DNA of 64,000 nt from positions 1-64,000 of the IMG/VR virus record IMGVR_UViG_3300027736_001324; one strand, 5' to 3'. Below the pieces are notes generated by a model. The model searched no databases and was not told the DNA's origin. It saw only the letters and a list, made by a program, of their open reading frames with translations. The position numbers were made by a program, and so were the translations under genes. Of the stretch, positions 1-56,000 are shown piece after piece (the first letter of the stretch is position 1; the number at the start of each line of letters is the position of its first letter).

Positions 1-430
1 ATAACCCGTTGCACCAGTTGCTCCATCAAATCCAGTTGCACCTGTACCTCCATCAAATCCAGTTGCACCTGTACCTCCATCATAACCCGTTGCACCAGTT
101 GCTCCATCATAACCCGTTGCACCTGTACCTCCATCAAATCCAGTAGCACCTGTGCCACCATCAAATCCAGTTGCACCTGTACCTCCATCATAACCCGTTG
201 CACCAGTTGCTCCATCAAATCCAGTTGCTCCAGTTGCTCCGTCTAGACCAGTTGCACCAGTGCTGCCATCGAATCCAGTCGCTCCAGTTGCTCCATCAAA
301 TCCAGTTGCTCCAGTTGCTCCGTCTAGACCAGTTGCACCAGTGCTGCCATCAAATCCAGTTGCACCAGTGCTGCCATCAAATCCAGTTGCACCAGTTGCA
401 CCATCAAATCCAGTCGCACCTATTGCGCTC
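1..430 (-). repeat. Collagen-like Gly-X-Y coding repeats (GAT-G[F/Y/L]D-GxT)
   Basis: Recurring ccagttgcacc / ccatcaaatcc units; minus-strand translation has Gly every third residue. Confidence 0.9.
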
Positions 431-22369: not shown

Positions 22370-23125
22370 TTACGCTTTTTTACAGTTGTCTCCGTGCCAT
22401 CTTGCGTAACCATTAACTGCTACCTGTTGATTACAATGTGGGCACAATTTCTTTTCACGCTTTGATCCCGTTAATGCTGCTATCTTCTTTGCGATTGTTT
22501 CAGGTGATTGTTTTCTTCCTATTGCTTTTTCTTTCATCTTTTGTTTAGTTTGCTCACTGTGAGTTTTATTGAACATTGGATTATTCTCACTGCGCTTTTT
22601 AACTGCCATTTTTTCTACCCATTCTGCTGAGAACGGGGAGCGTTTCTTTCCTAACTTGCTTTCTGATATTTTTTTGCGAGACTCTACTTTTTTTGCACCA
22701 TTTTTTTCTCCTAATACTGCTTCACGCTGTCTAGTATATCCTTCTTTACTACGATAAAATTTATCACCGTACATTGGATTATTTTCACCACTAAATCTTT
22801 CACTCTGTAATCTAGTATATTCTTCTTTTAGTTTTGCATATACTCTACTTGTTATTTTTGTATCGTATCGTTGTTGATTTTTATTCTCTGCTCTCATCAT
22901 TCTAAGAGCATTGAGCATCTTCCAATGTTCTTCACCGGTAGGATATATTTTTGTTAGTAACCAATGACACACAAAATGCTCTCTGGCTGTAATATAGATA
23001 AGATTAGATTCATTATCCGTTCCACCAAGACTTCTAGGCAATATGTGATGATGTTCGTAACCAGGAAGTTTTTCATGCTTACCGATCGCAACTATTTGAT
23101 TATACCATTTTTTATATTTGTTCAT
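22370..23125 (-). CDS. Free-standing HNH homing endonuclease with NUMOD3-like repeats and C-terminal Cys/His motif
   Basis: EHHHILPRSLGGTD...N...REHFVCH; NPMYG/NPMFNKTHSEQTK repeats; CPHC...HGDNC. Confidence 0.85.
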   Translation of the reverse strand: MNKYKKWYNQIVAIGKHEKLPGYEHHHILPRSLGGTDNESNLIYITAREHFVCHWLLTKIYPTGEEHWKMLNALRMMRAENKNQQRYDTKITSRVYAKLKEEYTRLQSERFSGENNPMYGDKFYRSKEGYTRQREAVLGEKNGAKKVESRKKISESKLGKKRSPFSAEWVEKMAVKKRSENNPMFNKTHSEQTKQKMKEKAIGRKQSPETIAKKIAALTGSKREKKLCPHCNQQVAVNGYARWHGDNCKKA

Positions 23126-26224: not shown

Positions 26225-27052
26225 TTATATTCTACGCTTTACTGTCTTGCGTGATTCAGCAACAGGGCTCTTAGCATTAGATCCATCATCAGCCTTTTTA
26301 GGAGCCGGAGCCTTTTCTAAGTCAGCATTGTTTTGTGCCGGAGCATTCTTCCAGTTGTTAGCGTTCTTTACACTTGTTTCACCTTTTGAGTAGAAGTTGC
26401 TAGGTCCTTTAGGACTTGTAGGAACTGTCTCACTAGCGCCACTGAACTTTACTGGACGACTGTCCATTCCAGCTTGTCCACTGTTGTTTAAACTTGTGCT
26501 TTTTGTGTTCTGACCGTTGTCACCATGAGTAACAGATACTTTCTTCAAAGTAATTGCTTCCATCATAGCTTCTTCGTCATGATCTTGTTCCATGTCATGT
26601 GTTAAATCTTCACCATCTTCTTCAGCATGGTCATCAAATTCAGCGTCAGACTCATCGTCACCCATTTCTGAGTCGCCATTACCCATGATTTCTTCAAATT
26701 CAGCCATCAATTGGTCTAATTTATCTTCAATGCTTACTAGACGATCTTCAACACCTTCATCGTCCATGTCATCGTCGGCTTCGATATCAACGATATCGTC
26801 ATCACCGTCGTCATCAAAGTCAATTTCATCTTCTTCCTCTTCGGTCATGCCTTCTTCTTCAGCACTGATTTCAGCCATCATCTCGCCTACTTGACCGCCT
26901 GGGTTCATGCCTTCATCCATTTCATCGGACATTATATCTTCATAGATTTCGCGGCTTTTTTCAACTACGATATCGTGAAATAATGCACGGGCTTGTTCTT
27001 CGTTCTCGTTGATAATCAAATCAATAAGTTGTTCAAATTTTTTGTGGTCCAT
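26225..27052 (-). CDS. Highly acidic prohead core-type protein
   Basis: D/E-rich; located in the head module; AGGAG SD and TAAATA upstream. Confidence 0.6.
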   Translation of the reverse strand: MDHKKFEQLIDLIINENEEQARALFHDIVVEKSREIYEDIMSDEMDEGMNPGGQVGEMMAEISAEEEGMTEEEEDEIDFDDDGDDDIVDIEADDDMDDEGVEDRLVSIEDKLDQLMAEFEEIMGNGDSEMGDDESDAEFDDHAEEDGEDLTHDMEQDHDEEAMMEAITLKKVSVTHGDNGQNTKSTSLNNSGQAGMDSRPVKFSGASETVPTSPKGPSNFYSKGETSVKNANNWKNAPAQNNADLEKAPAPKKADDGSNAKSPVAESRKTVKRRI

Positions 27053-27147
27053 TGTTTGTTTCTCCTAAGTAATGGCTTTGTATTATATTTACACCATATC
27101 TTAACAAACAGTGTTATAAGTACTGTTTTTTTACGTTTTTAGGAGAG

Positions 27148-27375
27148 TTATACGGTTGGTGCGCCTGCTTCGGGCTTAACACCATATTGTTCGTGTACTT
27201 TTTTGATATACTTTGCTTTTTCAAAATTACGAACATCTAACATTTTTCTAAGTTTGCGTATCTGTCTTAATGTTAGTTTTGTCTTACGACTTTCTTTCCA
27301 CTTTGGTTTGCTGTTGTCCGCTTCGGTATCTTGGTAGCCTTCTACGGCGGGATTAAACATTTCAAAGAGTTTCAT
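27148..27375 (-). CDS. Small basic hypothetical protein (75 aa)
   Basis: Fills the gap after portal; TAAATA 7 nt upstream of the ATG. Confidence 0.7.
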   Translation of the reverse strand: MKLFEMFNPAVEGYQDTEADNSKPKWKESRKTKLTLRQIRKLRKMLDVRNFEKAKYIKKVHEQYGVKPEAGAPTV

Positions 27376-27390
27376 AGATATGTATTTATC

Positions 27391-29208: not shown

Positions 29209-32200
29209 TTAAACCTGAGAATACTTTAATATTTTGTCGGAGATATTGTTACCATCTCTAATAGCAGATATCATCGAATCAAATTTATCTTCCATGAGAT
29301 CGTGTATTCCTGCTAATATTTCAGCAGACTGGTCTACTTTGGAACTTGATATGTTATCATTTGCCATTACAGTAGACAATGGTTCTTTCTTTGGAGGGTT
29401 AGTTTCTTGTTCTGATTTTTCTACTCTAATCTTTTCACCTGGGTTCAATGGAACTGCTGCTTCTCTTAAGCCAGCTTCAGCTAGATTTACATGTACCCCG
29501 CCCGGTCTTGGCTCAAATACGCCGCCGTCAAATGCATTTAGTTGACCATGAAAATGTCCACCTGTTCGGAATGCGCCCGAAGTATCATTGTATTCATCTT
29601 TAACTAAATCTAGTCCCAATGCTTTTAGTTGTGATTTTATTTTCTCACCTTCTTCTTTTGAAGGGGTTTTATTTAGAGAAAAGTCAAATGCTTTTCCTTT
29701 AGTATGCTGCGATTTTGGAGTATTTTCAGTATGATAAACATCATTAAATCCAGTGAATTGTGAAAACCCTGGAATAGTTTCCTGAACCTTTTTTGCTATA
29801 TCAATAAGTTTAGGATCAATATCTCCGTTATTTTTCTGAAGGTCACGGCCCGGGCTAAAAATCAGTCCTATCTTCTTAAGCATATCCGTACCTGCTTTAA
29901 TCATCCCTCCCGAAGTAGATGCTTGTGGTACAGGGGCTGAACCTGATGCTCCACTGCCCGCAGCAGTGGCCGGTGCGCCGGCCGGCGCAGTTGTTGATCC
30001 ATCGCCGCCGGGCGCCGGTGCAATTGCCGAAAGTATTTGAGACAGTACGTTAGGTAACATATCTGTTACCTTATTCATACTAATAATTAGTTTGTCTGAT
30101 GTTTTAGTTTGTTTCTCTAATAATTTATTATTGTCTTTAGATAAATCGTTGTTTATTTTTCCTAATTCAACCGTCTTAGCTGATACATCAATTGATCCAG
30201 AAAAGTTAGAATTAAGTTTCAATATCTGAGCATACCGTTGATCATTATCACCCTTGGCACCAGTACCACCTATCATGCCACTAAGTACATCCAATGGCAT
30301 AATTGCTTCTGGCTTGCCTTTTTCACCTACTGTAACTGTCGTACCTTTTTCAGTACCCGGAACAAGGCCTCCCTTTTCTTTCTTAGGTGGTATATCTGCT
30401 GCAGGTGTTGCCTCAGTGGGGGTTGCTTTTGCCCAGATTCTCTCCCTATTTGCAGCAGCAGAACGTCCTTGGGGAGAATTATCATAAAGCGGTGCTGTAA
30501 CAGGTACTGTCTGGTTTGTCCGCAATGCCTGGGCTTGTGCAGTTGTTGTAACCGGTGCTGCAACAGGTGCTGCAACAGGTGCTGCAACAGGTGGTTTGGC
30601 AGTTGTTGTAACCGGTGCTGCTGCAGGTGCTTCCTCTGCGGAGTCGTCAATTGCGTCATTTGCATTTATAGTTTTTACTGGGTTTTTTCCTCTACCTACA
30701 TATGCATTCATTGTACCTTCTTGAGTGCTTGATCCCGATTGTGTGGCTATTTTTAATTTGTTAGATTTAGCTAATTTTAATTGTTCCTCTACTTTTGCAT
30801 AATCTGCATTTTCTTTTTTAAGTACTGCTTCTTTTTCAGCCGTTTGTTTATCTACTAATGCCCTTTCAGCTTCAATTCTGTCTTTAGTAAGTTTGGTTTG
30901 TTTTTCTTGAAGTGCTGCTAATTCTTTAGATACATCGGTACCGTTTGCTCTTTTCTTTTCTATTTGTTTGGCTTCTTCACCCAAAGCAACTTGTTTTGCC
31001 AAGAAAAGTTGATTTTGCTGGACACGTTGAGCCTCAAACTTTTCTTTAAAGTCCTCGGTTGATCTTCCCATCTTATCTTCGAGTGCAGCTTTATCTTCTG
31101 TCAACTCTTTTTGTTTTACTAATAATGCTTTTTCTTTTTCTAATGTTTTTACACGATCACCCCACAATGCCAATTCTTCACGATTTGCAGAAGTGTTTTC
31201 TCCTTTTTTTATTTTTTCTTCAACTGCTGCTTTTCTTGCGTTAGCACTATCTATTTGTTCTTGTTTTTTGTCTATGTTTATTCCTATGTTTTCAGCCTCA
31301 CCTCTAGTACCTTTAAATGCAGCATTATACATTTGTTTAGCGGCTGTCAACATTGAAGATGCAGCTTTACCAAACATACCGCCGGCTTCTTTCATCTGAT
31401 TAGCTGCGCCTAATTGACCATTTAATAATTGAGTTTGTTTAGCTATTGCTTCATCCTGTGTCTTTCTCCCTGTTTCTACATCACTGGTGGTTCTTGGATC
31501 TTTAGCAACTCGTGATAGCATTTGATCCATTGCCTTCTCATCAAATGGTTTACCTTTATTTTTAGGATCTTTTTCCCATTCTAGCCTAAGTTTGTTTGCA
31601 TTATCAAAGGTATTAATACCATCTAATAATTTTGGAATGTCAAGGTCTGCAAGTCCACTAATAGCATCTGATTTTATTCTTGCTAGTGGTGCTAATTCTT
31701 TAAAACCAGCTCTTAATTCGTTACTCAATGTCCCCAATCTAGTCTGAGCAGTACCTTCTCCCTTTCTATATTGTTCTATCGTTCCACCGATCATTCTTAT
31801 AGCCTTAGCAGAAGAAGAATCAACTATTTGTCCGTTATTAGCCGCCGCTTTAGCTGTACCGGTTGCTAATTCTTTTTGACCAATAAGTTCTAACTTAGAC
31901 ACTAGATCCATCTGGCGTTGTAATGATAATACTCTTAACTCAGCTTCTTTATCTCCTCCCTTTGCTTTTTCTTGTTCATCAAATATAGCTGCACGTAATT
32001 CAGATTGAGCCATTGCAAGGTCACGGGCATTTTCTTGTTCTTTTCGTGAGGCTCCGGTCAATGCTGCTGTTTTGTCTAACTCACTAATATAATTTTGAGT
32101 ACCTTTAATTAAATCTTGTTTTGATTTACCTTCAAGTAATCCAAATCTAGCCTGCATTGCCATGTATTTTTGAGCATGTTCCATTTGAGCATTTTGGCTA

Positions 32201-33597
32201 ATCCCCATCTTCTCAAATGTTCTACTCATTTTGCTGTTTATTAAGCCACCTGTAACTTCAATAAAACTCTTAGCGCCGGCCATCGTAGTAGAGCCAAACA
32301 TTGCTATTTCTCGGGTGTTGCTTGATAATATTTTATTAAGTTTTTCAAACTCTTTAATAGTCAACCCTACCGATTTAAGATCATCTATTAAACCGGTAAC
32401 ACCTCTTGCCCCGGTAACTGATGCTTCACCTAATTGCAAGAAATTTTTAAATGCTTCATCTTCAAGTGCAGCACGGTCTTTGTTTAGTTTAGCATCTCGT
32501 CTTATAATTTCCGCTTCAGCTTGAGAAGCATATCCAAGAATAGCCAACAACCCACCTATTGCTACTGCCAACAATCCAATTGGGCCAGTTGCTAGTGTTA
32601 CTTGAACACCTACTGCCATCATAGTGGCACCAAAATCAACCATACCACCACCTGTTTTTTCTAATGATGATGCATATGCCTCTGCTTGTGCAGAAACCAT
32701 GGCAGCTGCCACGCTTTGACCTCTTACTCCATCTAATAACGCATCTTCATATGCTATTAGACCTTTATAAGTTCCTACTATTCCGGCTTTTAAAAAGTCA
32801 AACGCAGCCGTTAAAACAAAGCTACCGGCGGCTATGGCTCCTTTTTTACCAAACATATCTTTGAATTCTTCCAAAGCTTTTTCAGCTTTTTCTCTGGCTT
32901 CATTTTCTGCTTTTATTTTTCTTAATGAGGCTTCTTGTTCTTTGTTTAATTTGATAGTCGTGTCTATTATTTTATTATTACTATCAACATAACGACCCAT
33001 TGAAGCTAACTGTTGCTTATATAATTTTTCTTGGTCCATTGCAAGTTTAGCATTTTTTGCATCTGTCCCATATTTTTTTTGTAGATCAGGACTTTCAGCA
33101 AGACCCTTTTGCAAATCTTCTATTAATTTTTTTTCAATTGATTCACGTTCATTAGCTAATTGATGTAATTTACCCTGACTATCTTTTACTAATCCTAAAC
33201 TTTCAAGTTCATACTTGGCGCGCCGCTCAAAAGTTTCTTTTTGAGCCTCATTAATTTTGTTAAGTTCGGCATCATATGCATTGTCTTTTTGAATTTGTCG
33301 TTGAGTTAATTGGTTGGCTTCAGCATCTAGTTCTTTTTGACGTTCTATTTGCTTGTCTTTATCACTTAATGAATTCCATATAGCCTTTGCTTCGTCGTCA
33401 CGGGCATCCTTTAAAGCCTGCGCAGCTTGTTCACGTTCTTTTTGTTCACGTCGGCGGAGAAATTTTTCTTCCTCAGTTAGGACTTCTGCTTCTGCAATTG
33501 CTTCTCTAGTGCTATCATTTCTGGAACCCAGACCTTCAGCCAACAATTGAAGTTGTTCAAGAATTGATCTAGATAGATTGTCATTTTCTATTGGCAT
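29209..33597 (-). CDS. Tape-measure-like protein with hydrophobic segments and C-terminal LAS/M15-type peptidase motif; start revised to 33597
   Basis: Long helical protein; hydrophobic GPIGLLAVAIGGLLAILG; VGEKGKPEAIMP motif; SQHTKGKAFDF...GGHFH. The 33732 start would overlap the divergent gene. Confidence 0.75.
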   Translation of the reverse strand: MPIENDNLSRSILEQLQLLAEGLGSRNDSTREAIAEAEVLTEEEKFLRRREQKEREQAAQALKDARDDEAKAIWNSLSDKDKQIERQKELDAEANQLTQRQIQKDNAYDAELNKINEAQKETFERRAKYELESLGLVKDSQGKLHQLANERESIEKKLIEDLQKGLAESPDLQKKYGTDAKNAKLAMDQEKLYKQQLASMGRYVDSNNKIIDTTIKLNKEQEASLRKIKAENEAREKAEKALEEFKDMFGKKGAIAAGSFVLTAAFDFLKAGIVGTYKGLIAYEDALLDGVRGQSVAAAMVSAQAEAYASSLEKTGGGMVDFGATMMAVGVQVTLATGPIGLLAVAIGGLLAILGYASQAEAEIIRRDAKLNKDRAALEDEAFKNFLQLGEASVTGARGVTGLIDDLKSVGLTIKEFEKLNKILSSNTREIAMFGSTTMAGAKSFIEVTGGLINSKMSRTFEKMGISQNAQMEHAQKYMAMQARFGLLEGKSKQDLIKGTQNYISELDKTAALTGASRKEQENARDLAMAQSELRAAIFDEQEKAKGGDKEAELRVLSLQRQMDLVSKLELIGQKELATGTAKAAANNGQIVDSSSAKAIRMIGGTIEQYRKGEGTAQTRLGTLSNELRAGFKELAPLARIKSDAISGLADLDIPKLLDGINTFDNANKLRLEWEKDPKNKGKPFDEKAMDQMLSRVAKDPRTTSDVETGRKTQDEAIAKQTQLLNGQLGAANQMKEAGGMFGKAASSMLTAAKQMYNAAFKGTRGEAENIGINIDKKQEQIDSANARKAAVEEKIKKGENTSANREELALWGDRVKTLEKEKALLVKQKELTEDKAALEDKMGRSTEDFKEKFEAQRVQQNQLFLAKQVALGEEAKQIEKKRANGTDVSKELAALQEKQTKLTKDRIEAERALVDKQTAEKEAVLKKENADYAKVEEQLKLAKSNKLKIATQSGSSTQEGTMNAYVGRGKNPVKTINANDAIDDSAEEAPAAAPVTTTAKPPVAAPVAAPVAAPVTTTAQAQALRTNQTVPVTAPLYDNSPQGRSAAANRERIWAKATPTEATPAADIPPKKEKGGLVPGTEKGTTVTVGEKGKPEAIMPLDVLSGMIGGTGAKGDNDQRYAQILKLNSNFSGSIDVSAKTVELGKINNDLSKDNNKLLEKQTKTSDKLIISMNKVTDMLPNVLSQILSAIAPAPGGDGSTTAPAGAPATAAGSGASGSAPVPQASTSGGMIKAGTDMLKKIGLIFSPGRDLQKNNGDIDPKLIDIAKKVQETIPGFSQFTGFNDVYHTENTPKSQHTKGKAFDFSLNKTPSKEEGEKIKSQLKALGLDLVKDEYNDTSGAFRTGGHFHGQLNAFDGGVFEPRPGGVHVNLAEAGLREAAVPLNPGEKIRVEKSEQETNPPKKEPLSTVMANDNISSSKVDQSAEILAGIHDLMEDKFDSMISAIRDGNNISDKILKYSQV

Positions 33598-33680
33598 ATT
33601 AATTTTACCCGTGTTTTTAACTAATAAATAGTTATATATGTATTTATTGTTTGTAAAAATACATTTTTGGAGAAATATCA

Positions 33681-34502
33681 ATGACAAACCCACTAAGACA
33701 ATACTTTCGTAGACCTGCACTTTATCTAACATTACCTAGTAGAGGTAAATTTTACCCTGAAGGAGCATTAGAAATGCCGGAAAACGGAGAACTTGCGGTA
33801 TATCCTATGACTGCAATTGATGAGATTACTAGTAAAACCCCCGATGCATTGTTTAACGGTAACGCAGTACCTGAAATTATCAAAAGTTGTGTCCCGGGAA
33901 TAAAAGACCCGTGGGCAGTTCCCAGTGTAGATATGGATGCTATTTTGGTTGCTATTCGTGCTGCTACTAGCGGTAATGATTTGGAAATCAGTAGCACTTG
34001 TCCTAAATGTGAAGAAGAAAGTAAGTATAATATCAACTTGGGATTTTTACTAGGTAGTATTAAAGCCAGCGACTATAATGAAGTGTTTCACATGGGGGAA
34101 TTAACGCTTAAATTTAAACCATTAAATTACACTCAGGTCAATGAAGGCAATATGGGGCAATTTCTTATACAACGTGAAATAAACGGATTAGAAGGAATGA
34201 CAGATGATACTGAAAGAAGCAAAGTATCCGGTGAAATTATGAAAAAATTGACCCAGATGAATATGGAATTAATCGGTTCAGTAATCGAATCTATAACAAT
34301 CCCAACTGAAGTGGTAACTAATAGAGAATTTATTAGTGAGTTCCTATCAGGATGTGACAGGGCTACTTATGAAAAAATTCGTCAACATGTATTAAGACTA
34401 AGAGATAGTTCAAATATTAAACCACAACATATCAAATGTGTAAGTTGCTCACATGAATATGATCAAGCACTAGTGTTAAACGTTTCTGATTTTTTCGAGT
34501 AA
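33681..34502 (+). CDS. gp26: Baseplate hub assembly / tail chaperone protein, gp26-like
   Basis: LTLPSRG..YP, PMTAIDE, AIRAAT, two CxxC motifs, C-terminal DFF. Confidence 0.8.
   Translation: MTNPLRQYFRRPALYLTLPSRGKFYPEGALEMPENGELAVYPMTAIDEITSKTPDALFNGNAVPEIIKSCVPGIKDPWAVPSVDMDAILVAIRAATSGNDLEISSTCPKCEEESKYNINLGFLLGSIKASDYNEVFHMGELTLKFKPLNYTQVNEGNMGQFLIQREINGLEGMTDDTERSKVSGEIMKKLTQMNMELIGSVIESITIPTEVVTNREFISEFLSGCDRATYEKIRQHVLRLRDSSNIKPQHIKCVSCSHEYDQALVLNVSDFFE
34490..34496 (+). other. Candidate -1 ribosomal frameshift heptamer T TTT TTC
   Basis: X XXY YYZ pattern in correct phase two codons before the stop; -1 frame is open into 34550-34726. Confidence 0.65.
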
Positions 34503-34549: not shown

Positions 34550-34726
34550 ATGGATGAAGAAACAACAACAATTAAGAAAAATGCATTAAAGTTTTCTTGG
34601 TATATGCGGGGCGGAGTATCCTATGAGGATGTACTTAATATGTCTGAATCGGAAAGAGAAGCTATAAGTCAAATCATAGATGAGAACTTGGAAACTACTA
34701 AGAAAACTCAGATGCCATTCTTCTAA
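34550..34726 (+). CDS. Small gp51-like protein (58 aa; missing from the ORF track); may be made as a frameshift fusion
   Basis: MDEETTTIKKNALKFSWYMRGGVSYEDVLNMSESERE...MPFF; position immediately after the gp26-like gene. Confidence 0.7.
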   Translation: MDEETTTIKKNALKFSWYMRGGVSYEDVLNMSESEREAISQIIDENLETTKKTQMPFF

Positions 34727-34734
34727 TCCGTAAT

Positions 34735-35220
34735 TATTCATTTATCAACTTTGGGATGTTTCATTAAGAGATGAACTTCGTTCATCTAAGAACTCACTTC
34801 GTTCGTTCTTATTTCTTTCAGTATACGGAATCGTTTAAGACTTTAATTGTATCGGATATATATTGCCGATTAGAAGCCATGGTAGTGCAAATTTGCACCA
34901 CCAATGGGAAAGGTATGTTTGCCATGACCGTCGTCCAGTGTTATCTATCCCCCAATTAATCGCCTATTTCTGACACTAACTGCTACCGGTTGCTCTGTAA
35001 AGTATTATGGGACTGTAGTGAAGCTAACAACTTTAGTTGTTTCTTCCGCAACGCACATTCTATGAAATCAAGATAAAGTATTCATAGACTTGTTGAAGGT
35101 TCGCTTTGCCGATTGCCTTCTCGGTATACCCATAGTTATTGCTAACTATGCTTACTCCAGATCCGTCAGCACAGCACTACCTGTACAAACTCAAGGAGGA
35201 CTCACAAACTGAGCCAACGA
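34735..35220 (-). ncRNA. Candidate large structured non-coding RNA / origin-like region
   Basis: Longest gene-free gap in the window; at least 7 hairpins; G-U pairs and a GCAA tetraloop work on the minus strand. Confidence 0.55.
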
Positions 35221-35224
35221 ATTT

Positions 35225-35785
35225 TTATGTATTAATGGTTAAAAGGGAATCTTTGTTTTCTGTTGACTTGGTGTCTATTGTACTAGAATATGTTTTTAAT
35301 AAGTCTGTATTATGTAGGAAGAAACTATCAAATTCAAAAATCATCCAGTCTCCGTGTTTTTGAGATGTATAGTATGTGAAGTTATCCGCAACCCATGTTA
35401 GTTTGCTTTGTACACAAACATAGCGACCTTTACGGGTAATTTTAATAAATAAAATATTAATGTCATTTGTGTCCTCTACTGCTAGTAATTGTCCTAGCCA
35501 AGTATCTAATTGCTTACATTCCCCAGTAAGTAATAGATGAAACGGGAAGTCAGCATAATTTTTACACTCAGCATTGAAATGCGCCCAAGTGTCAGGTGGA
35601 GTTATATCACCCTTAAAAGATTTGGCTTGATTCCCGTCTAAAAAGTTCTTTCGATGTGAATTAGCGCCCCCAATATAAGCCCCTGAGTTTGGAACACGAA
35701 CAAATGGCTCCCCGTAAGTATCGCTGAGAAATTTTGCAATTTCTCTCTCATAAGAACTACCTTTTGTTTTACTTTTTGAAGTCAT
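35225..35785 (-). CDS. PD-(D/E)XK nuclease, Hjc-like Holliday junction resolvase
   Basis: KGSSYERE...RVPNSGA...GDI...AECK motif order. Confidence 0.75.
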   Translation of the reverse strand: MTSKSKTKGSSYEREIAKFLSDTYGEPFVRVPNSGAYIGGANSHRKNFLDGNQAKSFKGDITPPDTWAHFNAECKNYADFPFHLLLTGECKQLDTWLGQLLAVEDTNDINILFIKITRKGRYVCVQSKLTWVADNFTYYTSQKHGDWMIFEFDSFFLHNTDLLKTYSSTIDTKSTENKDSLLTINT

Positions 35786-35805: not shown

Positions 35806-36549
35806 TCAGGCACTGATAAATTTACACTTGTCACCGTGAAACATTGTATAATGATTTTTTGCTATTGTCCGATTACAATGTTCACATACTTTTTGATTTT
35901 TTAGTTTCTTCATAGGATTATTTTCACCTGAGTTTTTTAATCTTGTCATTGCTTTATTGTAATCAGACGCAGGAATTCCATACATTGGATTTTTATCACC
36001 CCTCATTCGGTCAGACAATTTTGAATTTCCAGTGAGAGATTTGCTAATATTTTCATTATGAGAAGCTGGTCTATTTTTTGCATATTTTTGCACACCTATA
36101 CTCTGATTCTGTTTTCTAATATCATCATGCTTTTTCCCATAATGGGGAGACTTCTCTCTAACTTTACCATACATGGGATTTTTATTACCTGTTCTAGCTT
36201 TACTTTTACGTTGTCTAGTAATTGAATTTTCTTTAACACCGTACCGATTGTATAATCCGTCTCCGTTGTGTTGGTTAAAACTCATTGCATCATCTTTGGC
36301 ATTGAGTGATTTAAGAAGTACACGCTCTAACTCGGCAACATATCCTGCCTCGCCTATGTGTAATATTTCAAAAGTCCACTCATTTCTGTTTTTCAATATC
36401 ATTGGTTTGACTTCTTTACTGGAACATATATATTCTTCATGGCGTGATGGATTCCAACCGTTGCGTATTTTAGATCCAATATACCACCGTCCGGATGGAA
36501 TATGAATCCACTTATAGATATAAGGTATAGTTTTGTTATAAATAGTCAT
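35806..36549 (-). CDS. GIY-YIG-like (Seg-type) homing endonuclease with NUMOD3-like repeats
   Basis: YIYKW...WYIGS, later LE...FN; three NPM repeats; CEHC...HGDKC; AAGGAG SD. Confidence 0.75.
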   Translation of the reverse strand: MTIYNKTIPYIYKWIHIPSGRWYIGSKIRNGWNPSRHEEYICSSKEVKPMILKNRNEWTFEILHIGEAGYVAELERVLLKSLNAKDDAMSFNQHNGDGLYNRYGVKENSITRQRKSKARTGNKNPMYGKVREKSPHYGKKHDDIRKQNQSIGVQKYAKNRPASHNENISKSLTGNSKLSDRMRGDKNPMYGIPASDYNKAMTRLKNSGENNPMKKLKNQKVCEHCNRTIAKNHYTMFHGDKCKFISA

Positions 36550-36627: not shown

Positions 36628-38391
36628 TTATTCTATGTTTACTGAGGTATCATACGTAGTAAAGCCATGCTCCTTAACTACACGAAGGACGTTAGGTACC
36701 CTATTTACTAATTCCTCCTTATGGGAAACAAGCCAGATTGATTTGTGTCTGCGGCGAGTCATCTCTTTTAGAATTGCAAGAGAATTCTCAACTCCAACAC
36801 CATCAGTGCCGTTATCTAATAGTTCGTCAATGAACAACAAATTGATTGGGGAATACAAGTTTTCCCAAACATCACGGAATGCCCAAGACAATGATAGAAT
36901 AACTCTATTCATTTCTCCCCTTGATAAATTATAGAAATCCATTTCACGACCCAATTCCGTAATCTCAACTTGTAAATCATTCTTAAATATTACTTGATGT
37001 GGCAATCCAATCTTATCTAAGTAATGTGTCAATCTACCATTCAAATATGATAGATTCTGGTCAATAATCTTTTTACGAACAAAGCTATCCTTGCTAGTTA
37101 AAATATCAAGCAAGAACTTTTGGTGTTCCATTGTGCGTGTCAATTGATTAATTCTGTCAAAGTTAATCTCTTGCAATGCTTGGTTCTCCATCTCTGAAAT
37201 CTGTTCACTATACGGATCAACTTCTTCGCCTTTACGTTCAATATCTTTAATAAGATTCTCAAGTTGGCTACTGTGTTTGATTGCTTGTGCTTCAGTATCA
37301 TAATGAGTAGTTGGCATTGCACCTAATGCACCCAAGTCCTTTAATGCTTGAGTATGTTCCATGAATTGTTTATTGATAGTTAAAACTTGAAATGCTGCTT
37401 CATGTGATGCTTTTATCTTCTCATCCAACACACTTTCATGCTTTTGATCATGGAACTCTTGACCACAAGCATAACATTTGTGGTCACGCAAATCACTAAT
37501 TTCTGTTGTTAGTTTATTAACTAATTTTTGTTCTTTGGCTTCGTCAGCTACACAACGAGCAATTAGTTTATTGAGGTCATCAATAGTCTTGCGCTTTTCA
37601 TTGTATGCTGTTAAATCTTTGTGAGCCTGTAATTCATTAGCAATATCAATAGTGATTAGTCTTTGATAATCAATAGCAAGACGTTCTAAATCTTCATCGT
37701 GCTTCATCTTCCACAATTTCTGTCTACGTTTAGTAGAATCAATTTGTTCTTTTACACGCTTATTGGCTTCCTCAATTGCTTTTACTTTGAATTCTTCTTG
37801 CTGAATATCATCTTTGCTATCTTTAACCAATCCCTTAATCACTTCTGCTTTTTCTGAAAGCAAGGTGATACCCAATAATTGTTCAATGATAGCACGTTGT
37901 TCATTATTTTTCAATGCAAGAAATGGTTCAGAATAGGTGTTAAGTGCCACGATATGTTTAAACATATCACTACTCATGTGGATCACTTTTTCAATCGCAG
38001 CTTGTGTTTCTTTGTTCTCGCCCTGTGCGTCATCCAATCCTTTTTGTAAATCACTATTTACATAGAATCGTAGGATGTTGGGCTTACGTCCACGTTCAAT
38101 CTTATAATCTATCCCATTAACACTAAACTCTAGTGTTACCATCATGTTTTTACCATTGGTACGATTAACTAGATTATCTTTACGAATACTGTTAATGGGA
38201 ACACCAAACAATGCATAACTCAATGCTTGGATGAGTGATGTTTTACCCGTACCATTACGAGCGCCATCACCACCTAAGTCTAGATTTTCACCTAGAATAA
38301 GTGTTAGTTCCTGTCTGTCAAAGTTGACTGCTTGTGTTACTTGTCCGATTGATAAAAAATTACGGAGGGTGATATTCTTCAGAGTTATCAT
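36628..38391 (-). CDS. gp46: Rad50/SbcC-like recombination ATPase
   Basis: Walker A NGTGKTS, zinc hook CYAC, signature LSRGE, Walker B LLFIDE. Confidence 0.95.
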   Translation of the reverse strand: MITLKNITLRNFLSIGQVTQAVNFDRQELTLILGENLDLGGDGARNGTGKTSLIQALSYALFGVPINSIRKDNLVNRTNGKNMMVTLEFSVNGIDYKIERGRKPNILRFYVNSDLQKGLDDAQGENKETQAAIEKVIHMSSDMFKHIVALNTYSEPFLALKNNEQRAIIEQLLGITLLSEKAEVIKGLVKDSKDDIQQEEFKVKAIEEANKRVKEQIDSTKRRQKLWKMKHDEDLERLAIDYQRLITIDIANELQAHKDLTAYNEKRKTIDDLNKLIARCVADEAKEQKLVNKLTTEISDLRDHKCYACGQEFHDQKHESVLDEKIKASHEAAFQVLTINKQFMEHTQALKDLGALGAMPTTHYDTEAQAIKHSSQLENLIKDIERKGEEVDPYSEQISEMENQALQEINFDRINQLTRTMEHQKFLLDILTSKDSFVRKKIIDQNLSYLNGRLTHYLDKIGLPHQVIFKNDLQVEITELGREMDFYNLSRGEMNRVILSLSWAFRDVWENLYSPINLLFIDELLDNGTDGVGVENSLAILKEMTRRRHKSIWLVSHKEELVNRVPNVLRVVKEHGFTTYDTSVNIE

Positions 38392-39401
38392 AGATTGTTA
38401 TAAATTTCCAAGAGTATTCGTTTATCAAAGCTATTGCTTTCAATGCTATTGATTTGGTCAATAATGATTTGGTCTACTGATTCAAACTTCAAATCACCGC
38501 GCCCCTCTTGCTCAACTTGGTCTACTTTCATTGGTATCAATGCCATCTCTCTTAGTTTATGTTCTGGAATTAATGTTTCACGTATGAAGTTAGCTTCTTC
38601 ATATGAAATATCAATGTCAAGATGCACTCTAACATGACTATCAGGTAATAGCAATCCCTTTGGATTTTCTAATATATCGCTTAACTTGTGAACACGATAC
38701 AGTGGTTGTTTAGGCCAACTATGAAAGATTGGGTCTTGTCCCCATTCCATTACCATCATACCACGTGCATCATCTTGTGCATCAGCATAGTTATGTGGGA
38801 AACTATTGCCAATGTACCAAACATTAGCACGGCTTTGTCGTTTATGAAAATGCCCACTAAAGACATAATCAAAATCTTTCATATGATCGGTATTAATTTC
38901 ACCGTGATCGGGCATCTCTACCATAGCATTCATATAGAATCTTGGCAATTCAAAATGTCCAAACATATATTTGCCACTTAGTTTCTGAACCTTTTTGTAA
39001 TCATCCTGTACAAGCCATGGTGCAATTACTACATCTCCTTCGGTGAAGAAGTCGTTGACAATTTGTACGTTTGGTAAATGTTTAGCCCACTCAACACTAT
39101 GAATGTCCCTGCGGTCACGATAATAAAGGTCATGATTGCCCGGTATAAAATATACCCTATCAAAGTTATCATTTAGTTTCTCCAATGCTTGTAATCCAAA
39201 CTGTAGTGTGTGAATATTGATACTTGCTCTGTGATGATTATAATCACCCAAGAAAAAACAAGTTTCACACCCTTCACTTTTAGCTTTGGTTATAAACCAA
39301 TCTACAAAATTATTGCAGTCATGGTTATGCTGTAAGCTATTTGACTTAAGACCAAAATGAATATCGGTGAATACAGCGGCTTTTTTAAAAAGGTTAGTCA
39401 T
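38388..39401 (-). CDS. gp47: Mre11/SbcD-like nuclease; start revised to 39401
   Basis: DIHFG, LGD, GNHD, GHFH metallophosphoesterase motifs; ATGA overlap with gp46. Confidence 0.95.
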   Translation of the reverse strand: MTNLFKKAAVFTDIHFGLKSNSLQHNHDCNNFVDWFITKAKSEGCETCFFLGDYNHHRASINIHTLQFGLQALEKLNDNFDRVYFIPGNHDLYYRDRRDIHSVEWAKHLPNVQIVNDFFTEGDVVIAPWLVQDDYKKVQKLSGKYMFGHFELPRFYMNAMVEMPDHGEINTDHMKDFDYVFSGHFHKRQSRANVWYIGNSFPHNYADAQDDARGMMVMEWGQDPIFHSWPKQPLYRVHKLSDILENPKGLLLPDSHVRVHLDIDISYEEANFIRETLIPEHKLREMALIPMKVDQVEQEGRGDLKFESVDQIIIDQINSIESNSFDKRILLEIYNNL

Positions 39402-39418
39402 TCTTATATTGTATAATA

Positions 39419-39444
39419 AATGATGTTGCCGTAGCAACATCATT
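39419..39444 (-). promoter_or_regulatory. 11-bp hairpin with cTACGg loop, overlapping a possible sigma70-like promoter (TTGCTA-18-TACAAT)
   Basis: Minus strand AATGATGTTGC-TACG-GCAACATCATT between gp55 and gp47. Confidence 0.55.
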
Positions 39445-39451
39445 GGATAAA

Positions 39452-40363
39452 TTATTCTTCGTAAACTACCGAACTCATGCCAGCACCCAGACCTTGACGA
39501 GTCCAGCTTGGGTTAAGTCCATTAATCTCTAAGATATCATCACGTATATTTTGATTACGCTTTTCCGTATTTAATACACGACAGAAACTATTTGTTATAG
39601 CTGCGGTGTAATAAGCGAATGGGTTGGCTGATTTAGCTTCGTTGAAACGTAATCCAACGTAGGTAAGTTGCAGAATAGCGGAGTTCCGCATCTCATCGTT
39701 GTAAGTATACCCACGCCAATTGTATTTCATGGCATATTTTTCGCACATCATAATATACATACGGGCAAGTTTGTTTGTTACTTGTCCATGATCCTTACTG
39801 AATTCTCCAGAATTTAGATCACCTTTCCAATGACTTTTGCCCACGCAATAAAAAGTATTATTTTTATCAATCATATAATGTTGGAATGGGGGGAAGTTTA
39901 CTTTGACATGAACCATATCATCTACTTCAGCTTTGGTTGTCACATCCTCTAAGTCAGCAAAGATTTCATCTGGGTCAGCTTCTTCAAATTCAAAGATATC
40001 TTTTGCTGTTTTCTTTTTAACTGTTTTGCGGGGGACTTTTGGTGCTACTGGTACATGATCCCAATTCATTACTCTAAATATTAAATCTGTTACTGGGATA
40101 GATTCTGGGCTAACTGCGTCTTTTGAGCCTTGTTCCAAGCTAAGACGTAATGCTCTTGTTTCTTTAGCTTGTTGAATTGTTTCAGGTTTGAATGCGTATT
40201 CTAAACTTTCTTCAATAGAAGATTGGGGCATATCCACGATGAAATCATACCTATGATATTCGGGTTTAGCAAAATGACAGTATGCGTTTTTGCTTTCATG
40301 TATCTCTTTTAAGATATCTTTGTTATTTAAATAGTTGACAGGTTTTCTTGAGGGTAATGACAT
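39452..40363 (-). CDS. gp55: Late-transcription sigma factor, gp55-like
   Basis: YLNNKD, NWRGYTYNDEM, NPFAYYT...F motifs; 55-47-46 gene order. Confidence 0.85.
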   Translation of the reverse strand: MSLPSRKPVNYLNNKDILKEIHESKNAYCHFAKPEYHRYDFIVDMPQSSIEESLEYAFKPETIQQAKETRALRLSLEQGSKDAVSPESIPVTDLIFRVMNWDHVPVAPKVPRKTVKKKTAKDIFEFEEADPDEIFADLEDVTTKAEVDDMVHVKVNFPPFQHYMIDKNNTFYCVGKSHWKGDLNSGEFSKDHGQVTNKLARMYIMMCEKYAMKYNWRGYTYNDEMRNSAILQLTYVGLRFNEAKSANPFAYYTAAITNSFCRVLNTEKRNQNIRDDILEINGLNPSWTRQGLGAGMSSVVYEE

Positions 40364-52978: not shown

Positions 52979-53006
52979 GTAATATATAACATAAAGAATT
53001 TTAAAG

Positions 53007-56000
53007 ATGGCAACAAGAATTAGAACATTAAATTTCTTACCAGAGATATTTAAAACAGAAACCAATGCTCAGTTTCTAGCAGCAACGCTAGATCAGTTAG
53101 TATCACAACCTAATACTAAAAAGATAGAAGGATATGTTGGTAGTAAATTTGGTTATGGAATTAATGCTAATGATTATTATGTTACTGAACCAACAAAGAT
53201 AAGAACAGATTATCAATTAGAACCAGGGGTTGCTTTCTTAAAAGAAAATGATACCACCGCTACAGATTTTATTAGTTATCCTGGTATAATTGATTCACTA
53301 AAATTAGAAGGTGCATTAACGGATAACAACAATAGATTATTCAATAGTGAATTTTATTCATGGGATTCATTTACTAATTTAGATAAGATTATTAACTTTA
53401 ACCAATATTATTGGTTGCCAACAGGGCCTGAGCGTGTAGTTGTTGCCACCGATATTGTATATAATTCAGCAGCATATGTAGTTCAGAGTTTATCAAATGA
53501 ATATTTAATATCTTCTGAAACACTTACTACTCCTAGTTCTAATCCATCACTAACCTTATTGAGAGGGGGTACATATACATTTACTGTTAATCAAAATAGT
53601 CAATTCTGGATTCAAGGCGTCCCGGGCGTTACTGGATATAGCCCAACACAACGCAATGTACAAACTCGTGATGTATACGGAGTTACTAATAACGGAGCAG
53701 AAAATGGCATAGTAACATTTACTGTACCACAAAAAGATGCACTTAATGAATATAATTTTCCGCTTGGGCCGAGCATTGGAGTAATATCTACTCTCCCTTT
53801 CAGTGAAGTTAACGGAGCATTAGTAAATGATATTGGTGGAATTGACGGAGTAACCGCACTAAACGGATTAACCGTGATGTTTTACAATACAGGCATTGAA
53901 GATGAAATTGCTTATGTAAATCAATTTTATGATCAAACTACATATGATCAAGATGGGGGAGTAGCTTATGACTCCTTAGTTGATTATCCCGGTACATCAA
54001 TATTTAATAACAATTATGAAGGTGGATATTACACTACAGTAAACGCTAATTTTTATACAATAACTTTATTAGGTGATCAATCTAATCCGCAAATTCAATT
54101 GACCCCAACTGCACCTATACCAAATAATCAAATAATAACACCTTTGTTTGGTACTCAATTTGCTGATATAGGATTTTACAGAAATAGTATAGGAACCATA
54201 TCACCTATCCCATACAATAGTGCAATATTAGATAGACTATATTATCAAGATGGTTCTAATCCAAATAAAGTTGGGGTATTAAAGATTGTAGATAGTAATG
54301 TTACTAATACGTTAAACATCTTAACTCAAATTTTAGGTAGATCAACCTATACTGCACCAAATGGAGTGGTGTTTAGTAATGGATTAAAAGTTTTATTTCA
54401 GGGTGATATATATCCAGAAAGTTATAACAACGTAGAATATTATGTTGAGGGTGTGGGCACTGCTATTGAATTAATACCAGTAACAACTTTAGTTACCCCG
54501 GGGTTGTTCTCTGAAGGCACATACATCCCATATGATACATTAGCATATGATGTTGGTAATTATGATTCAAGTTTAAATATTCCAGTTGAACAAGATTATA
54601 TAACTATTGCTAGAAATGCAATTAATAAAAATGCATGGTCAAGAAGTAATCGTTGGTTCCACATTGATGTGATACGTGCTACTGCTTTGTATAACAACAG
54701 TCCCGACTTGGTTACTCAACTGGCTACTTTGAATAATAAAGCAAACCGTCCAATTATTGAATTTTATCCAAACTTAAGATTATTTGATTCAGGGGCATAT
54801 GGAAAACCTCCAATAGATTTCTTAGATACCCGTACTACTGATGCGTTTAGTCAAGTAGCCGGACAAACTAACTATTACCCTGACGTTGCTGGATACACTA
54901 CATACAATGCAACTATTGCACCAGTCACCGGTGCAATTACTACTAAAACCGCAACATCAACTACTGCGGTATCAAATGAAATCACTTTAAATAATACAAC
55001 CGGTGTTCATATTAATGATACCATTGTGTTTGGTGGTACAGTATTTGGTGGAATTGCTTCTGGCACTACTTACTACATTACTAATGTTATTGGTAATAAT
55101 ATTACAATATCAACTACTAAATTAGGAACTAGTCTTTCATTAACAACTAGTAGTGGAACAATGACTACTAGTATATATCCATATAGTACAACAATCACAA
55201 TCCCAACTAGTGATGTGTCCGGATTATTTGAAGTTGGTCAGTATATATCTGATTCTACAAATTTATTACCAACAATTACTTTTATTACAGATGTGACTAC
55301 AGTAAGTACAGATACTGTTATAACAGTCTCATGGGATAAAACAAATGCAACTGTTTCAGCAACTTCAGTAGCATCAGTAGTTACGGCTGATACTCCTTTA
55401 TCTAACTATGCATTGTTTGAGGGTTCTCGTGTTGTTTTTGCATCAGATACTAACTTAGAAGTTAGAAACAAAATATATGTTTCACATTTTTCTACCATCT
55501 CAGGTTCTTCTACTCCAATCATTACTCTTACTGAAGCAGAAGATGGTTTAGTATTGGCTGATGAACAAACTGCTGTATATAGAGGGTATACTAATAGAGG
55601 TAAAGACTTTTATTTTGACGGACTTTATTGGAATGCCGGACAACAAAAAACAAATGTAAATCAGCCACCTAAATTTGATGTGCTGGATAGCAATAATATA
55701 AGTTTTGGTAATCCAGAATATTATTTAGGTACCTCATTTACAGGATGTACATTATTTGCATTTGGTATTGGTACTGGTGCAAATGATTCTGTTTTGGGAT
55801 TCCCGTTGCGTTATAGTTCTGTAGATAACGTGGGTGATATAAGTTTTGATGTTACATTAAATAGTCAAACTTTTACTTATGTAGATGGAACTTCCCCGAT
55901 TACACAAAATGTAAACACCGGCTATATATTTAATTACCTAACTAGAACTGAGTATGTAAGAGAATTGGGATGGCAAACAGCAGTATCACCTAGTGTACAA

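Follow-up and report, generated by a model that had tools for sequence, protein, structure and literature searches.

Comparative analysis of a 498-base gene-free gap in a 64,000-nt stretch of an uncultured phage genome (positions 1 to 64,000 of IMG/VR record IMGVR_UViG_3300027736_001324, hereafter the window) indicated that it is the minus-strand gene of a large, intricately folded non-coding RNA with two pseudoknots. Every sampled member of a large clade of uncultured aquatic jumbo phages with T4-like core genes keeps this element at one genomic position. It matches no described RNA family and thus represents a new RNA class, whose function can at present only be inferred. An earlier note, made from the sequence alone, had proposed a strand-specific structured RNA of about 490 nt at this location, and this observation was confirmed. 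Its interpretation was only partly supported: the unannotated structured RNA with the sense of the upstream gene block held, whereas its two proposals for function did not gain support.

The gap is the longest gene-free gap of the window once the two giant ORFs that run off the window ends are counted, and its G + C content is 0.41, compared with 0.32–0.35 beside it. Upstream on the minus strand lies a gene for a PD-(D/E)XK (PDDEXK_15) Holliday-junction-resolvase-like nuclease (35225–35785), the last gene of a gp55-gp47-gp46-endonuclease-resolvase block. On the other side, a convergent plus-strand gene (34550–34726) encodes a 58-aa gp51-like protein that always ends in PFF and follows the baseplate hub gene at 33681–34502. 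The gap was conserved at 72–100% nucleotide identity, with lengths of 489–532 nt, in all 51 loci seeded by protein searches. Motif scans added 119 viral and 98 metagenome loci: 119 of 120 motif hits in IMG/VR had the same gene order, as did the 98 real metagenome hits, which included a divergent subclade, for about 270 loci in all. RNA-bearing contigs include ones of 230–525 kb. The element is single-copy, with one copy per window and per locus, and evolves more slowly than the synonymous sites of its neighbors.

Absence of conservation or covariation in relatives, or a conserved ORF, had been named beforehand as outcomes that would refute the proposal, and a strong Rfam hit as one that would remove its novelty; none of these was found. 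There was no conserved ORF, frame-breaking indels occurred, and diversity by codon phase was flat (0.19/0.19/0.20), compared with 0.10/0.16/0.30 in the nuclease gene and 0.16/0.44/0.27 in the gp51-like gene. The alternative that the feature is not an RNA but a DNA-level site, such as palindromes for a DNA-binding protein or a cruciform, or a protein-coding gene hidden by frameshifts or recoding, is therefore most unlikely. Helix P11 is a nearly invariant 30-bp palindrome, but the G·U preference described below and the conserved GNRA loop and pseudoknots also speak against this reading.

Folding energy alone gave only modest support. The 365-nt core folded to −103.7 kcal/mol on the minus strand (z −2.33; 0 of 100 shuffles as good) and to −86.6 kcal/mol on the plus strand (z −1.26; 12 of 100). 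The strong evidence is comparative. Of 96 pairs predicted by RNAalifold, 51 were compensatory. In a curated model of 114 pairs tested on 93 distinct copies, 95.0% of pair cells were standard pairs, against 32–46% when the partners were slid, and 74 of the 114 pairs changed on both sides. The covariation score was 0.379 against 0.06–0.08, and 0 of 500 shuffles reached it. The earlier note had pointed to G-U pairs on the minus strand that would be A-C mismatches on the plus strand in four stems. This bias held across the 93 distinct homologues, where 616 G·U/U·G cells were counted against 81 A·C/C·A cells in the 114 modelled pairs (7.6 to 1), indicating that the RNA is the minus strand.

All seven stems listed in the earlier note exist and correspond to helices of the covariation-supported model: 35199–35215 is P2, 35169–35186 is P3a, 35131–35150 is P4 (8 bp with a GCAA loop), 35059–35088 is P7, 35026–35041 is inner P9, 34953–34982 is P10, and 34881–34902 is P11. 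With RNA position i defined as window 35225 − i, the structured core spans RNA positions 1–365 (34860–35224, minus strand) and comprises helices P2–P11 plus the two pseudoknots. Ninety-three positions were invariant in the 93 distinct copies, and 41 of those are unpaired. Unpaired core positions were more conserved (0.205) than paired ones (0.266).

P2 (RNA 10–26) changed on both sides in five of its six pairs. P3 (35155–35198), formed by CUCC 27–30 and GGAG 67–70, encloses the variable hairpin P3a (35–60). An anti-Shine-Dalgarno-like CCUCCUU was considered as a free sequence, but it lies inside P3, which has a compensatory variant (CCUCU/CUAGAG) in two of the homologous loci, L083 and L112. 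P4 (RNA 75–94) carries a GNRA tetraloop (GCAA, GUAA, GCGA, or GUGA), and the divergent subclade has another hairpin at this place. The third base of this loop covaried with P2 pair 11–25 (MI 0.72), so P2 is the probable tetraloop receptor. Each had changed eight times on the tree, and in four to six of seven independent pairs they changed the same way and never the opposite way. The statistical support for this docking is marginal (p about 0.06).

The central domain (34984–35126) is closed by two long-range helices, P5 (99–103/237–241) and P8 (173–177/232–236). It contains hairpins P6 (105–130), P7 (133–169), and P9 (179–205) and the invariant joiner CACUACAG...UUUACAG.GCAACCGGU. P10 (34954–34981; RNA 244–271) changed on both sides in 8 of 10 pairs. 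P11 (34877–34907; RNA 318–348) is a 13-bp hairpin with nearly invariant sequence on both strands (CCAUUGGURGUGC...GCACUACCAUGG) that is kept even in the divergent subclade; CACUAC also occurs at RNA 205–210. A helix P1 joining the ends of the core (RNA 3–9 with 358–363) was considered but is unsupported, since it showed only one-sided changes and A·G mismatches and was not kept in the divergent subclade. The ends of the core are thus not closed in the model.

The G5 run reported in the earlier note at 34949–34953 is real and forms the 3′ strand of a pseudoknot that pairs with CCC at 35009–35011. In the model this pseudoknot, PK-a, pairs RNA 273–276 with 213–216 (35009–35012), and four of four pairs changed on both sides. 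The second pseudoknot, PK-b, pairs the P7 loop (35071–35076; RNA 149–154) with RNA 279–284 (34941–34946). It was detected by mutual information (ranks 13 and 36), five of its six pairs changed on both sides, and UUAUCU/AGAUAA was replaced by UUGAUU/AAUCAA, CUGUUU/AAACAG, and UCGUUU/AAACGA. The 3′ strands of both pseudoknots lie together at 34941–34952, and both pseudoknots were confirmed by new compensations in divergent copies.

These results bear on the proposal of the earlier note that the RNA is a replication primer or R-loop RNA analogous to ColE1 RNA II, or to the T4 oriF/oriG transcripts. In its favor, the element lies next to the recombination and replication genes gp46, gp47, and the resolvase, is single-copy and universal in the clade as an origin would be, and contains a G run and an A-rich stretch. 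However, a primer of this type runs unterminated into the origin and anchors a G-rich segment on template DNA, whereas here the G run pairs within the RNA with compensatory changes, the fold is globular, and a terminator-type hairpin follows. The G·U-tolerant covariation shows that selection acts on the RNA fold rather than on an RNA-DNA hybrid, and the GC-skew changes at this place simply follow gene orientation. The origin reading is therefore not supported and is considered very unlikely, although sequence evidence does not strictly exclude it.

Downstream of the core lies a variable A-rich linker (34811–34859; RNA 366–414), with a diversity of 0.466 against 0.239 in the core. It is followed by the T1 hairpin (34790–34808; RNA 417–435), which consists of a stem, an invariant tandem G·A/A·G, 2 bp, and a GAA triloop (GAACGAAGUGA) and is conserved in all clades. 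The tandem G·A pairs make sense only on the minus strand. On the plus strand, the complement of T1 is followed by a T-run, so it may also act as a terminator for the hub/gp51 transcripts. The T2 hairpin (34770–34786; RNA 439–455) is followed by U-rich sequence, and the divergent subclade has other, G + C-richer hairpins here, so that structure is kept and sequence is not. This suggests a released transcript, with T2 as the probable intrinsic terminator and 3′ end, but a consensus terminator scan called neither T1 nor T2.

At the other end, conservation begins at a sharp boundary, UAAAAAUU.G (35222–35230), which in the window includes the stop codon of the nuclease gene. This is a candidate processing site by inference only. 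Sigma-70-like promoter hits occurred at chance frequency, as did TAAAAATT in the window, which also fits the late-promoter consensus of the phage, (T)ATAAATA, poorly. The element starts 0–30 nt after the nuclease stop codon, and no terminator-like hairpin separates it from the upstream block, so co-transcription, as the earlier note proposed, is plausible. Contigs from lake and fish-gut metatranscriptomes covered the core of relatives, but these unstranded assemblies also covered the flanking genes at similar depth and ran from the nuclease gene into the RNA, and thus carry no information on strand, ends, or enrichment.

The same observations would suit a cis-acting 3′-UTR or inter-operon module, in which the folded RNA would remain part of the resolvase-operon message, block 3′ exonucleases, and insulate the convergent early/middle and late (hub/gp51) units, together with the back-to-back hairpins T1/T2, which may terminate in both directions, and perhaps the late-promoter-like box described below. 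The strictly fixed position between convergent operons fits this reading, and it is not excluded. However, a protective or terminator element does not need 365 nt with two pseudoknots, probable tetraloop docking, and 41 invariant unpaired bases, and terminators normally keep structure and not sequence, as T2 does. We therefore regard the cis-acting reading as unlikely, though less so than the other alternatives.

The second proposal of the earlier note, a dedicated partner of the adjacent nuclease (a scaffold, guide, or regulator, by analogy with the HEARO/omega RNAs of IscB and TnpB), is also not supported. The RNA abuts the 3′ end of the nuclease ORF in every locus, including the divergent subclade, but it is equally syntenic with the gp51-like and hub genes. 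Homologues of this nuclease in phages PA5oct, SCTP-2, and Phosso and in Campylobacter, Bacillus, and Enterococcus phages have no such RNA or gap. A mosaic junction inside the nuclease gene separates its 5′ half from the RNA, and one relative's locus, L005, has 99.8% RNA identity but only 75% nuclease identity. The family is annotated as a Holliday-junction resolvase type, and no RNA-guided member is known to us. No guide-like hypervariable segment was seen, since the only variable segment, the linker, is still partly alignable. This reading, too, is not strictly excluded on present evidence but is very unlikely. The gp51-like protein was likewise considered as an RNA-binding partner, but it looks like the C-terminal part of T4 gp51, and its matches to solved structures were insignificant.

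To determine whether the RNA belongs to a known family, the 64-kb window was searched against Rfam 15 (4,227 models, including GOLLD, ROOL, OLE, HEARO, raiA, 6S, RNase P, tmRNA, group I/II introns, and riboswitches), and no hit at or above a family's gathering threshold was obtained. Four divergent members gave only inconsistent sub-threshold noise at E values up to 10. ARAGORN found no tRNA or tmRNA in the window. No match was found in 50,697 phage records, cultured phages gave no DNA match and no profile match beside homologous nucleases, and none of 37 pattern hits in 185,579 bacterial and archaeal genomes was real. Complements of the conserved single-stranded motifs occurred nowhere else in the window beyond chance, giving no antisense targets there. 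Short resemblances to 5S rRNA (UGGUAGUG, GAAGUGA), the 16S 3′ end, and RNase P P4 were judged coincidental because no covariance model matched. Literature searches found no description of this RNA.

A degenerate or ORF-less self-splicing intron, or another mobile ribozyme element, was also considered. Homing endonuclease genes flank the element in some genomes, and the strand order P5/P8, PK-a 5′, P8′/P5′, P10, PK-a 3′ resembles the P3-P7-P3′-P8-P7′ pseudoknot of group I introns. However, there are no exons, since a stop codon lies upstream and a convergent gene downstream, and no Rfam intron model matched, even at E = 10, in four members. The joining segments do not fit group I either, with about 1 nt where J8/7 should lie and 15 nt where J7/3 should lie, and the homing endonucleases are present in only a few loci. 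This origin is therefore doubtful in the extreme.

Taken together, the comparative data establish the ~365-nt fold of about eleven helices around the long-range helices P5 and P8, the two pseudoknots that lock it, the succession of variable linker, T1, and T2, the conservation of a single copy at one position, and the slow evolution, while the docking of P4 on P2 is probable. The remainder is inferred, and we hold it with moderate confidence: transcription, with its strand and ends, as the last part of the early/middle gp55-gp47-gp46-(homing endonuclease)-resolvase message, termination at T2, and possible release at UAAAAAUU just behind the nuclease stop codon. The RNA would then act in trans through its compact tertiary fold, as the RNA subunit or scaffold of a ribonucleoprotein (RNP) or as a ribozyme, during replication, recombination, and the switch to late gene expression, and not by simple base pairing, priming, or coding. 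This role rests on analogy with other large, highly conserved RNAs, with no known partner protein, substrate, or target. A more far-reaching possibility, which is unlikely but not excluded, is a new natural ribozyme or an RNA-only or RNA-protein machine that forms part of the core equipment of a whole jumbo phage clade, with a fold unrelated to any solved RNA. It might be a processing or ligation catalyst, a multimeric scaffold like ROOL/GOLLD, or an RNA subunit needed for recombination-dependent replication or the early-to-late switch.

Large RNAs with elaborate, strongly conserved tertiary structure are rare and have historically turned out to be ribozymes, guide scaffolds, or unexpected assemblies, as with RNase P, HEARO/omega RNA, and ROOL/GOLLD. 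With at least 93 distinct full-length copies plus a divergent subclade, and with two pseudoknots and a probable tetraloop contact defined by covariation, the present RNA is ready for structural and activity studies. Its universality and fixed position suggest a core viral function carried out by RNA, in a widespread virus group whose biology is otherwise inferred only from proteins. It also shows that "empty" intergenic gaps in metagenomic phage genomes can hide genes missed by protein-centered annotation; the published IMG/VR catalogue of candidate RNAs is limited to motifs of 29–151 nt (PMC10690425).

Among known systems, the GOLLD and ROOL RNAs of phages and prophages (PMC12286853 for cryo-EM structures) are also very large for a bacterial or phage non-coding RNA, have many helices, pseudoknots, and invariant unpaired bases, and have no known function; GOLLD was first seen in lake metagenomes. 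There is no detectable sequence or structure relationship to them, the present core is smaller, it is not next to tRNA genes, and its position behind a resolvase gene is strictly fixed. HEARO/omega RNAs are likewise long structured RNAs abutting the end of a nuclease ORF and conserved together with it, but the nuclease here is a small PD-(D/E)XK resolvase type, not RuvC/HNH. 3′-UTR-derived bacterial RNAs released by RNase E, for example CpxQ and SroC, also lie directly behind a stop codon and have an A/U-rich conserved sequence at the 5′ boundary that fits the RN↓WUU preference of RNase E. They share the terminator of the mRNA, as the present RNA may do; for such processing and a shared terminator, the conserved UAAAAAUU at the boundary and the T2 hairpin give only indirect evidence. 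Those RNAs are 50–150 nt long and act by Hfq-dependent base pairing, whereas this one is 3–8 times larger with a globular fold. Group I introns and RNase P RNA are similar in size class, GNRA-helix docking (probable in the present RNA), nested long-range helices crossed by pseudoknots, and conserved joiner sequences, and ACAGAGCAACCGGUA recalls ACAGAACCCGGCUUA of RNase P, but the helix order differs and there is no P1/internal guide and no RNase P conserved region. The phi29 pRNA is also a phage-encoded, folded, non-coding RNA belonging to the core equipment of its phage, but its fold and size are unrelated, T4-type packaging motors are not known to use RNA, and no link to packaging genes was seen here.

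A conserved 19-nt box, GAUAAAUGAAYARUUACGG (34728–34746, minus strand), lies 14–40 nt from the gp51-like stop codon. Its invariant AUG opens only 5–7 codons in most loci, which does not support the start of a gene, and the box is not the end of the gp51-like gene either. A helix between the linker (..UCCGUA..) and the box (UACGGR) looked attractive in some loci, but the signal was no better than in shuffled controls (6.48 against 6.16 bp and 5.46 against 5.42 bp). The box occurs only in the main clade, is absent from the divergent subclade, and is probably not part of the RNA proper. It stays on the RNA side when a homing endonuclease is inserted and resembles the late promoter of the phage, ATAAATA.

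The 64-kb window derives from a 263.7-kb IMG/VR contig (L001), which represents a jumbo phage with T4-like core genes, including portal, prohead protease, major head protein, and baseplate genes. On the minus strand, a gp55-like late sigma factor (39452-40363), a gp47/SbcD-like gene (38388-39443), a gp46/SbcC-like gene (36628-38391), a NUMOD3 homing endonuclease (35806-36549), and a PD-(D/E)XK (PDDEXK_15) resolvase-like nuclease (35225-35785) were identified. A baseplate hub gene (33681-34502) and a 58-aa gp51-like gene (34550-34726) converge on this block from the plus strand, and the 498 bases between the two stop codons (34727-35224) constitute the element described here. Based on gp46, the nearest cultured relatives are Pseudomonas phage PA5oct, Sinorhizobium phage Phosso, Agrobacterium phage Atu_ph07, and Pectobacterium phage CBB, at 40-48% amino-acid identity.

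The seven stems and the G5 run listed in the earlier note were all found where it had placed them, and each stem coincides with a helix of the final model (P2, P3a, P4 with its GCAA loop, P7, inner P9, P10, and P11). The observation made in that note held, and it is far beyond chance. Single-sequence folding provided only modest support. The 365-nt core reached -103.7 kcal/mol on the minus strand (z -2.33; 0 of 100 shuffles as good) and -86.6 kcal/mol on the plus strand (z -1.26; 12 of 100), whereas the whole gap gave z -2.25 against -1.29. The G + C content rises to 0.41 in the gap from 0.32-0.35 beside it. The gap is also the longest gene-free stretch of the window, as the apparently ORF-poor ends proved to be two giant ORFs that run off the window, at 1-6054 (minus; at least 2018 aa) and 52995-64000 (plus; at least 3668 aa). 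The second-longest gene-free gap (338 nt, 27053-27390) lies between the 26225-27052 ORF and the portal gene.

To determine the conservation of the element, 51 IMG/VR loci were collected by a search with the nuclease protein. Every one of them carries a full-length homologue of the gap (489-532 nt, 72-100% identical) directly behind the nuclease gene, and the gap is as conserved as the flanking coding DNA, or more so. No ORF is conserved, and diversity is flat over the three codon phases (0.19/0.19/0.20), while the neighbors show the coding pattern (nuclease, 0.10/0.16/0.30; gp51-like, 0.16/0.44/0.27; hub, 0.32/0.23/0.51). A scan of IMG/VR for an invariant motif of the element returned at least 120 loci, and 119 of the 120 retrieved have the same order of gp46, optional homing endonuclease, nuclease, RNA, and then the convergent gp51-like and hub genes; the exception is a chance match in a G + C-rich coding region. 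A second, independent motif scanned over JGI, ENA, and TARA metagenome contigs returned at least 120 hits, of which 98 of the 120 retrieved are real by profile search. All of these have the same neighbors wherever flanks exist, including a more divergent subclade that includes a TARA ocean contig (nuclease 51-56% identical). The same motif scanned over 185,579 bacterial and archaeal genomes gave 37 chance hits and no true copy, and no DNA match was found in 50,697 deposited phage genomes.

Cultured phages with a homologous nuclease (PA5oct, SCTP-2, and Phosso) have neither the gap nor the RNA. In Phosso (PV764938.1; our locus L174), an unannotated gap of about 1 kb (1987-3000) lies upstream of the Holliday junction resolvase gene, but the profile of this RNA does not match it. 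Meanwhile, the IMG/VR locus L005 has a nuclease only 75% identical in protein but a gap 99.8% identical in DNA. A mosaic junction lies inside the nuclease gene near 35558-35575, where many nucleotide alignments stop, and eight loci (L042-L049) have a different N-terminal region of ~68 aa. The suggestion of the earlier note that the RNA could be a partner of the adjacent nuclease is weakened by the RNA-free homologues of the nuclease, by this mosaic junction, and by the lack of a guide-like segment.

RNAalifold analysis of 36 copies predicted 96 pairs, of which 51 have compensatory changes. Next, 93 distinct full-length copies were aligned, and mutual information (MI) with average-product correction recovered the helices and two pseudoknots. 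In the curated model, where RNA position i equals window 35225 - i, the helices are P2 (10-26), P3 (27-30 with 67-70), P3a (35-60), P4 (75-94), P5 (99-103 with 237-241), P6 (105-130), P7 (133-169), P8 (173-177 with 232-236), P9 (179-205), P10 (244-271), and P11 (318-348). The pseudoknots are PK-a (213-216 with 273-276) and PK-b (149-154 with 279-284), and two further hairpins, T1 (417-435) and T2 (439-455), lie in the 3′ part. On the MAFFT alignment, which was not fitted to the structure, 95.0% of 10,465 pair cells are standard pairs, against 32-46% when partners are slid by 1-3 columns. In addition, 74 of 114 pairs change on both sides, the covariation score is 0.379 against 0.06-0.08, and none of 500 shuffles reaches any measure.

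Both pseudoknots are well supported, with double changes in 5 of 6 pairs of PK-b and 4 of 4 pairs of PK-a. In the divergent subclade, PK-b is rewritten several times, from UUAUCU/AGAUAA to UUGAUU/AAUCAA, CUGUUU/AAACAG, UCGUUU/AAACGA, and UUAUCUC/GAGAUAA. The G run is therefore the 3′ strand of PK-a. This intramolecular use of the G run, together with the globular fold and the putative terminator described below, weakens the other suggestion of the earlier note, that of an R-loop primer. The anti-Shine-Dalgarno-like CCUCCUU is the 5′ strand of P3, which pairs with an invariant GGAG and has a compensatory CCUCU/CUAGAG variant.

In the modeled pairs, G.U/U.G occurs 616 times and A.C/C.A 81 times, indicating that selection has acted on the minus-strand transcript, the sense of the nuclease operon. 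T1 contains invariant tandem G.A/A.G pairs, which would be pyrimidine mismatches on the other strand. The P4 loop is a GNRA tetraloop in the main clade (GCAA, GUAA, GCGA, or GUGA), and its third base covaries with pair 11-25 of P2, where A goes with G.U and G goes with U-A (38 cases each; MI 0.72, the strongest partner of that column). On a tree built without these columns, each trait changed 8 times, and in 4-6 of 7 independent pairs they changed the same way and never the opposite way (p about 0.06). These results suggest probable tetraloop-helix docking, although the statistics are marginal. Unpaired core positions are more conserved than paired ones (0.205 against 0.266), and 93 core positions are invariant in 93 copies, 41 of them unpaired. 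These are the marks of a compact, functionally constrained RNA rather than a chain of hairpins.

Non-Watson-Crick covariation was also observed between RNA positions 298 and 356 (window 34927 and 34869), with G with G 54 times and U with U 39 times. The motif GGCAA occurs three times, at RNA 115-119, 302-306, and 358-362 (window 35106-35110, 34919-34923, and 34863-34867). These observations could reflect a base triple, a repeated binding site, or a phylogenetic artifact. The invariant hexamer CACUAC occurs twice, at RNA 205-210 and 338-343 (window 35015-35020 and 34882-34887), so the P11 5′ strand GGUAGUG could pair with either copy. This would allow a conformational switch, on which covariation is uninformative because both copies are invariant.

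The core is followed by a variable A-rich linker (diversity 0.466), whereas T1 and T2 together are the most conserved segment in the main clade (0.135). Comparison with the divergent subclade separated their roles. The T1 motif GAACGAAGUGA (tandem G.A plus a C(GAA)G triloop) is kept everywhere, while T2 is replaced by other, G + C-richer hairpins followed by U-rich sequence, a pattern expected of an intrinsic terminator. The complement of T1 on the plus strand is followed by a T-run, so it may terminate the hub/gp51 transcripts. However, a simple consensus scan called neither hairpin, and the terminator role is thus our reading. A 19-nt box, GAUAAAUGAAYARUUACGG (34728-34746, minus strand), is conserved only in the main clade, is absent from the divergent subclade, and lies 14-40 nt beyond the gp51-like stop codon. 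Its invariant AUG opens only a 5-7-codon ORF, and the box is unique in the window. It resembles the late promoter of the phage, (T)ATAAATA, which sits 20-30 nt upstream of many late genes. An antisense late promoter is one possibility, and we do not count the box as part of the RNA.

At the 5′ boundary, conservation begins abruptly at UAAAAAUU.G, after the variable C-terminal tail of the nuclease, and in some loci a short non-coding spacer intervenes. This sequence fits the RN|WUU preference of RNase E but fits the late-promoter consensus poorly, and sigma-70-like matches nearby are at chance level. Contigs assembled from lake and fish-gut RNA libraries cover the core of relatives, one of them being a 350-nt contig over 34917-35271 at depth 28.5, but these contigs also cover the flanks at similar depth, carry no strand information, and may include DNA, and therefore do not prove expression.

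A search of the 64-kb window against Rfam 15 gave nothing at gathering thresholds, and four divergent members searched at E up to 10 gave only inconsistent noise. ARAGORN found no tRNA or tmRNA. The element is not an intron, because there are no exons and the junction lengths are wrong. No complementary targets for the conserved single-stranded motifs occur elsewhere in the window beyond chance. Literature searches found no description of this RNA, and the IMG/VR-wide catalog of candidate viral RNAs reports only motifs of 29-151 nt (PMC10690425), so that at most fragments of this RNA could be listed there.

Overall, the comparative analysis shows a new family of large, pseudoknotted, minus-strand RNA that is universal in the sampled members of a widespread clade of uncultured aquatic jumbo phages. 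Its expression, its production as the end of the transcript of the recombination and late-sigma operon, and its possible release by processing are inferred, and any binding or catalysis is hypothetical. Its most likely mode of action, with moderate confidence, is as a folded, trans-acting RNA (RNP subunit or ribozyme) produced from the 3′ end of that operon. A purely cis-acting 3′-UTR or insulator role is the main alternative, but it is considered unlikely. The interpretation in the earlier note was thus partly supported, in that a large structured RNA in the sense of this operon is upheld, whereas neither of its two proposed functions is.

Homing endonuclease genes were found near the element and elsewhere in the window. 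The free-standing NUMOD3 gene (35806-36549), between gp46 and the nuclease gene, is present in only a few relatives (loci L078, L106, and copies of this contig) and absent from most. In loci L080, L081, L117, L129, and L170, a GIY-YIG-type homing endonuclease gene (~165-190 aa, starting MTIYLYKKTHNITGLKYLGKT) is inserted between the 19-nt box and the gp51-like gene, about 300-900 nt downstream of the RNA motif, and the box stays on the RNA side. Locus L099 carries a different 215-aa ORF at the same place. Another homing endonuclease gene (22370-23125; phrog_655, E 5e-45) sits next to the major head protein gene. Finally, a 1507-aa ORF (29209-33732, minus) overlaps the start of the hub gene by 52 nt, and late-promoter-like ATAAATA sites at 33624 (plus) and 33647 (minus) suggest divergent late promoters and a later true start for the large gene.
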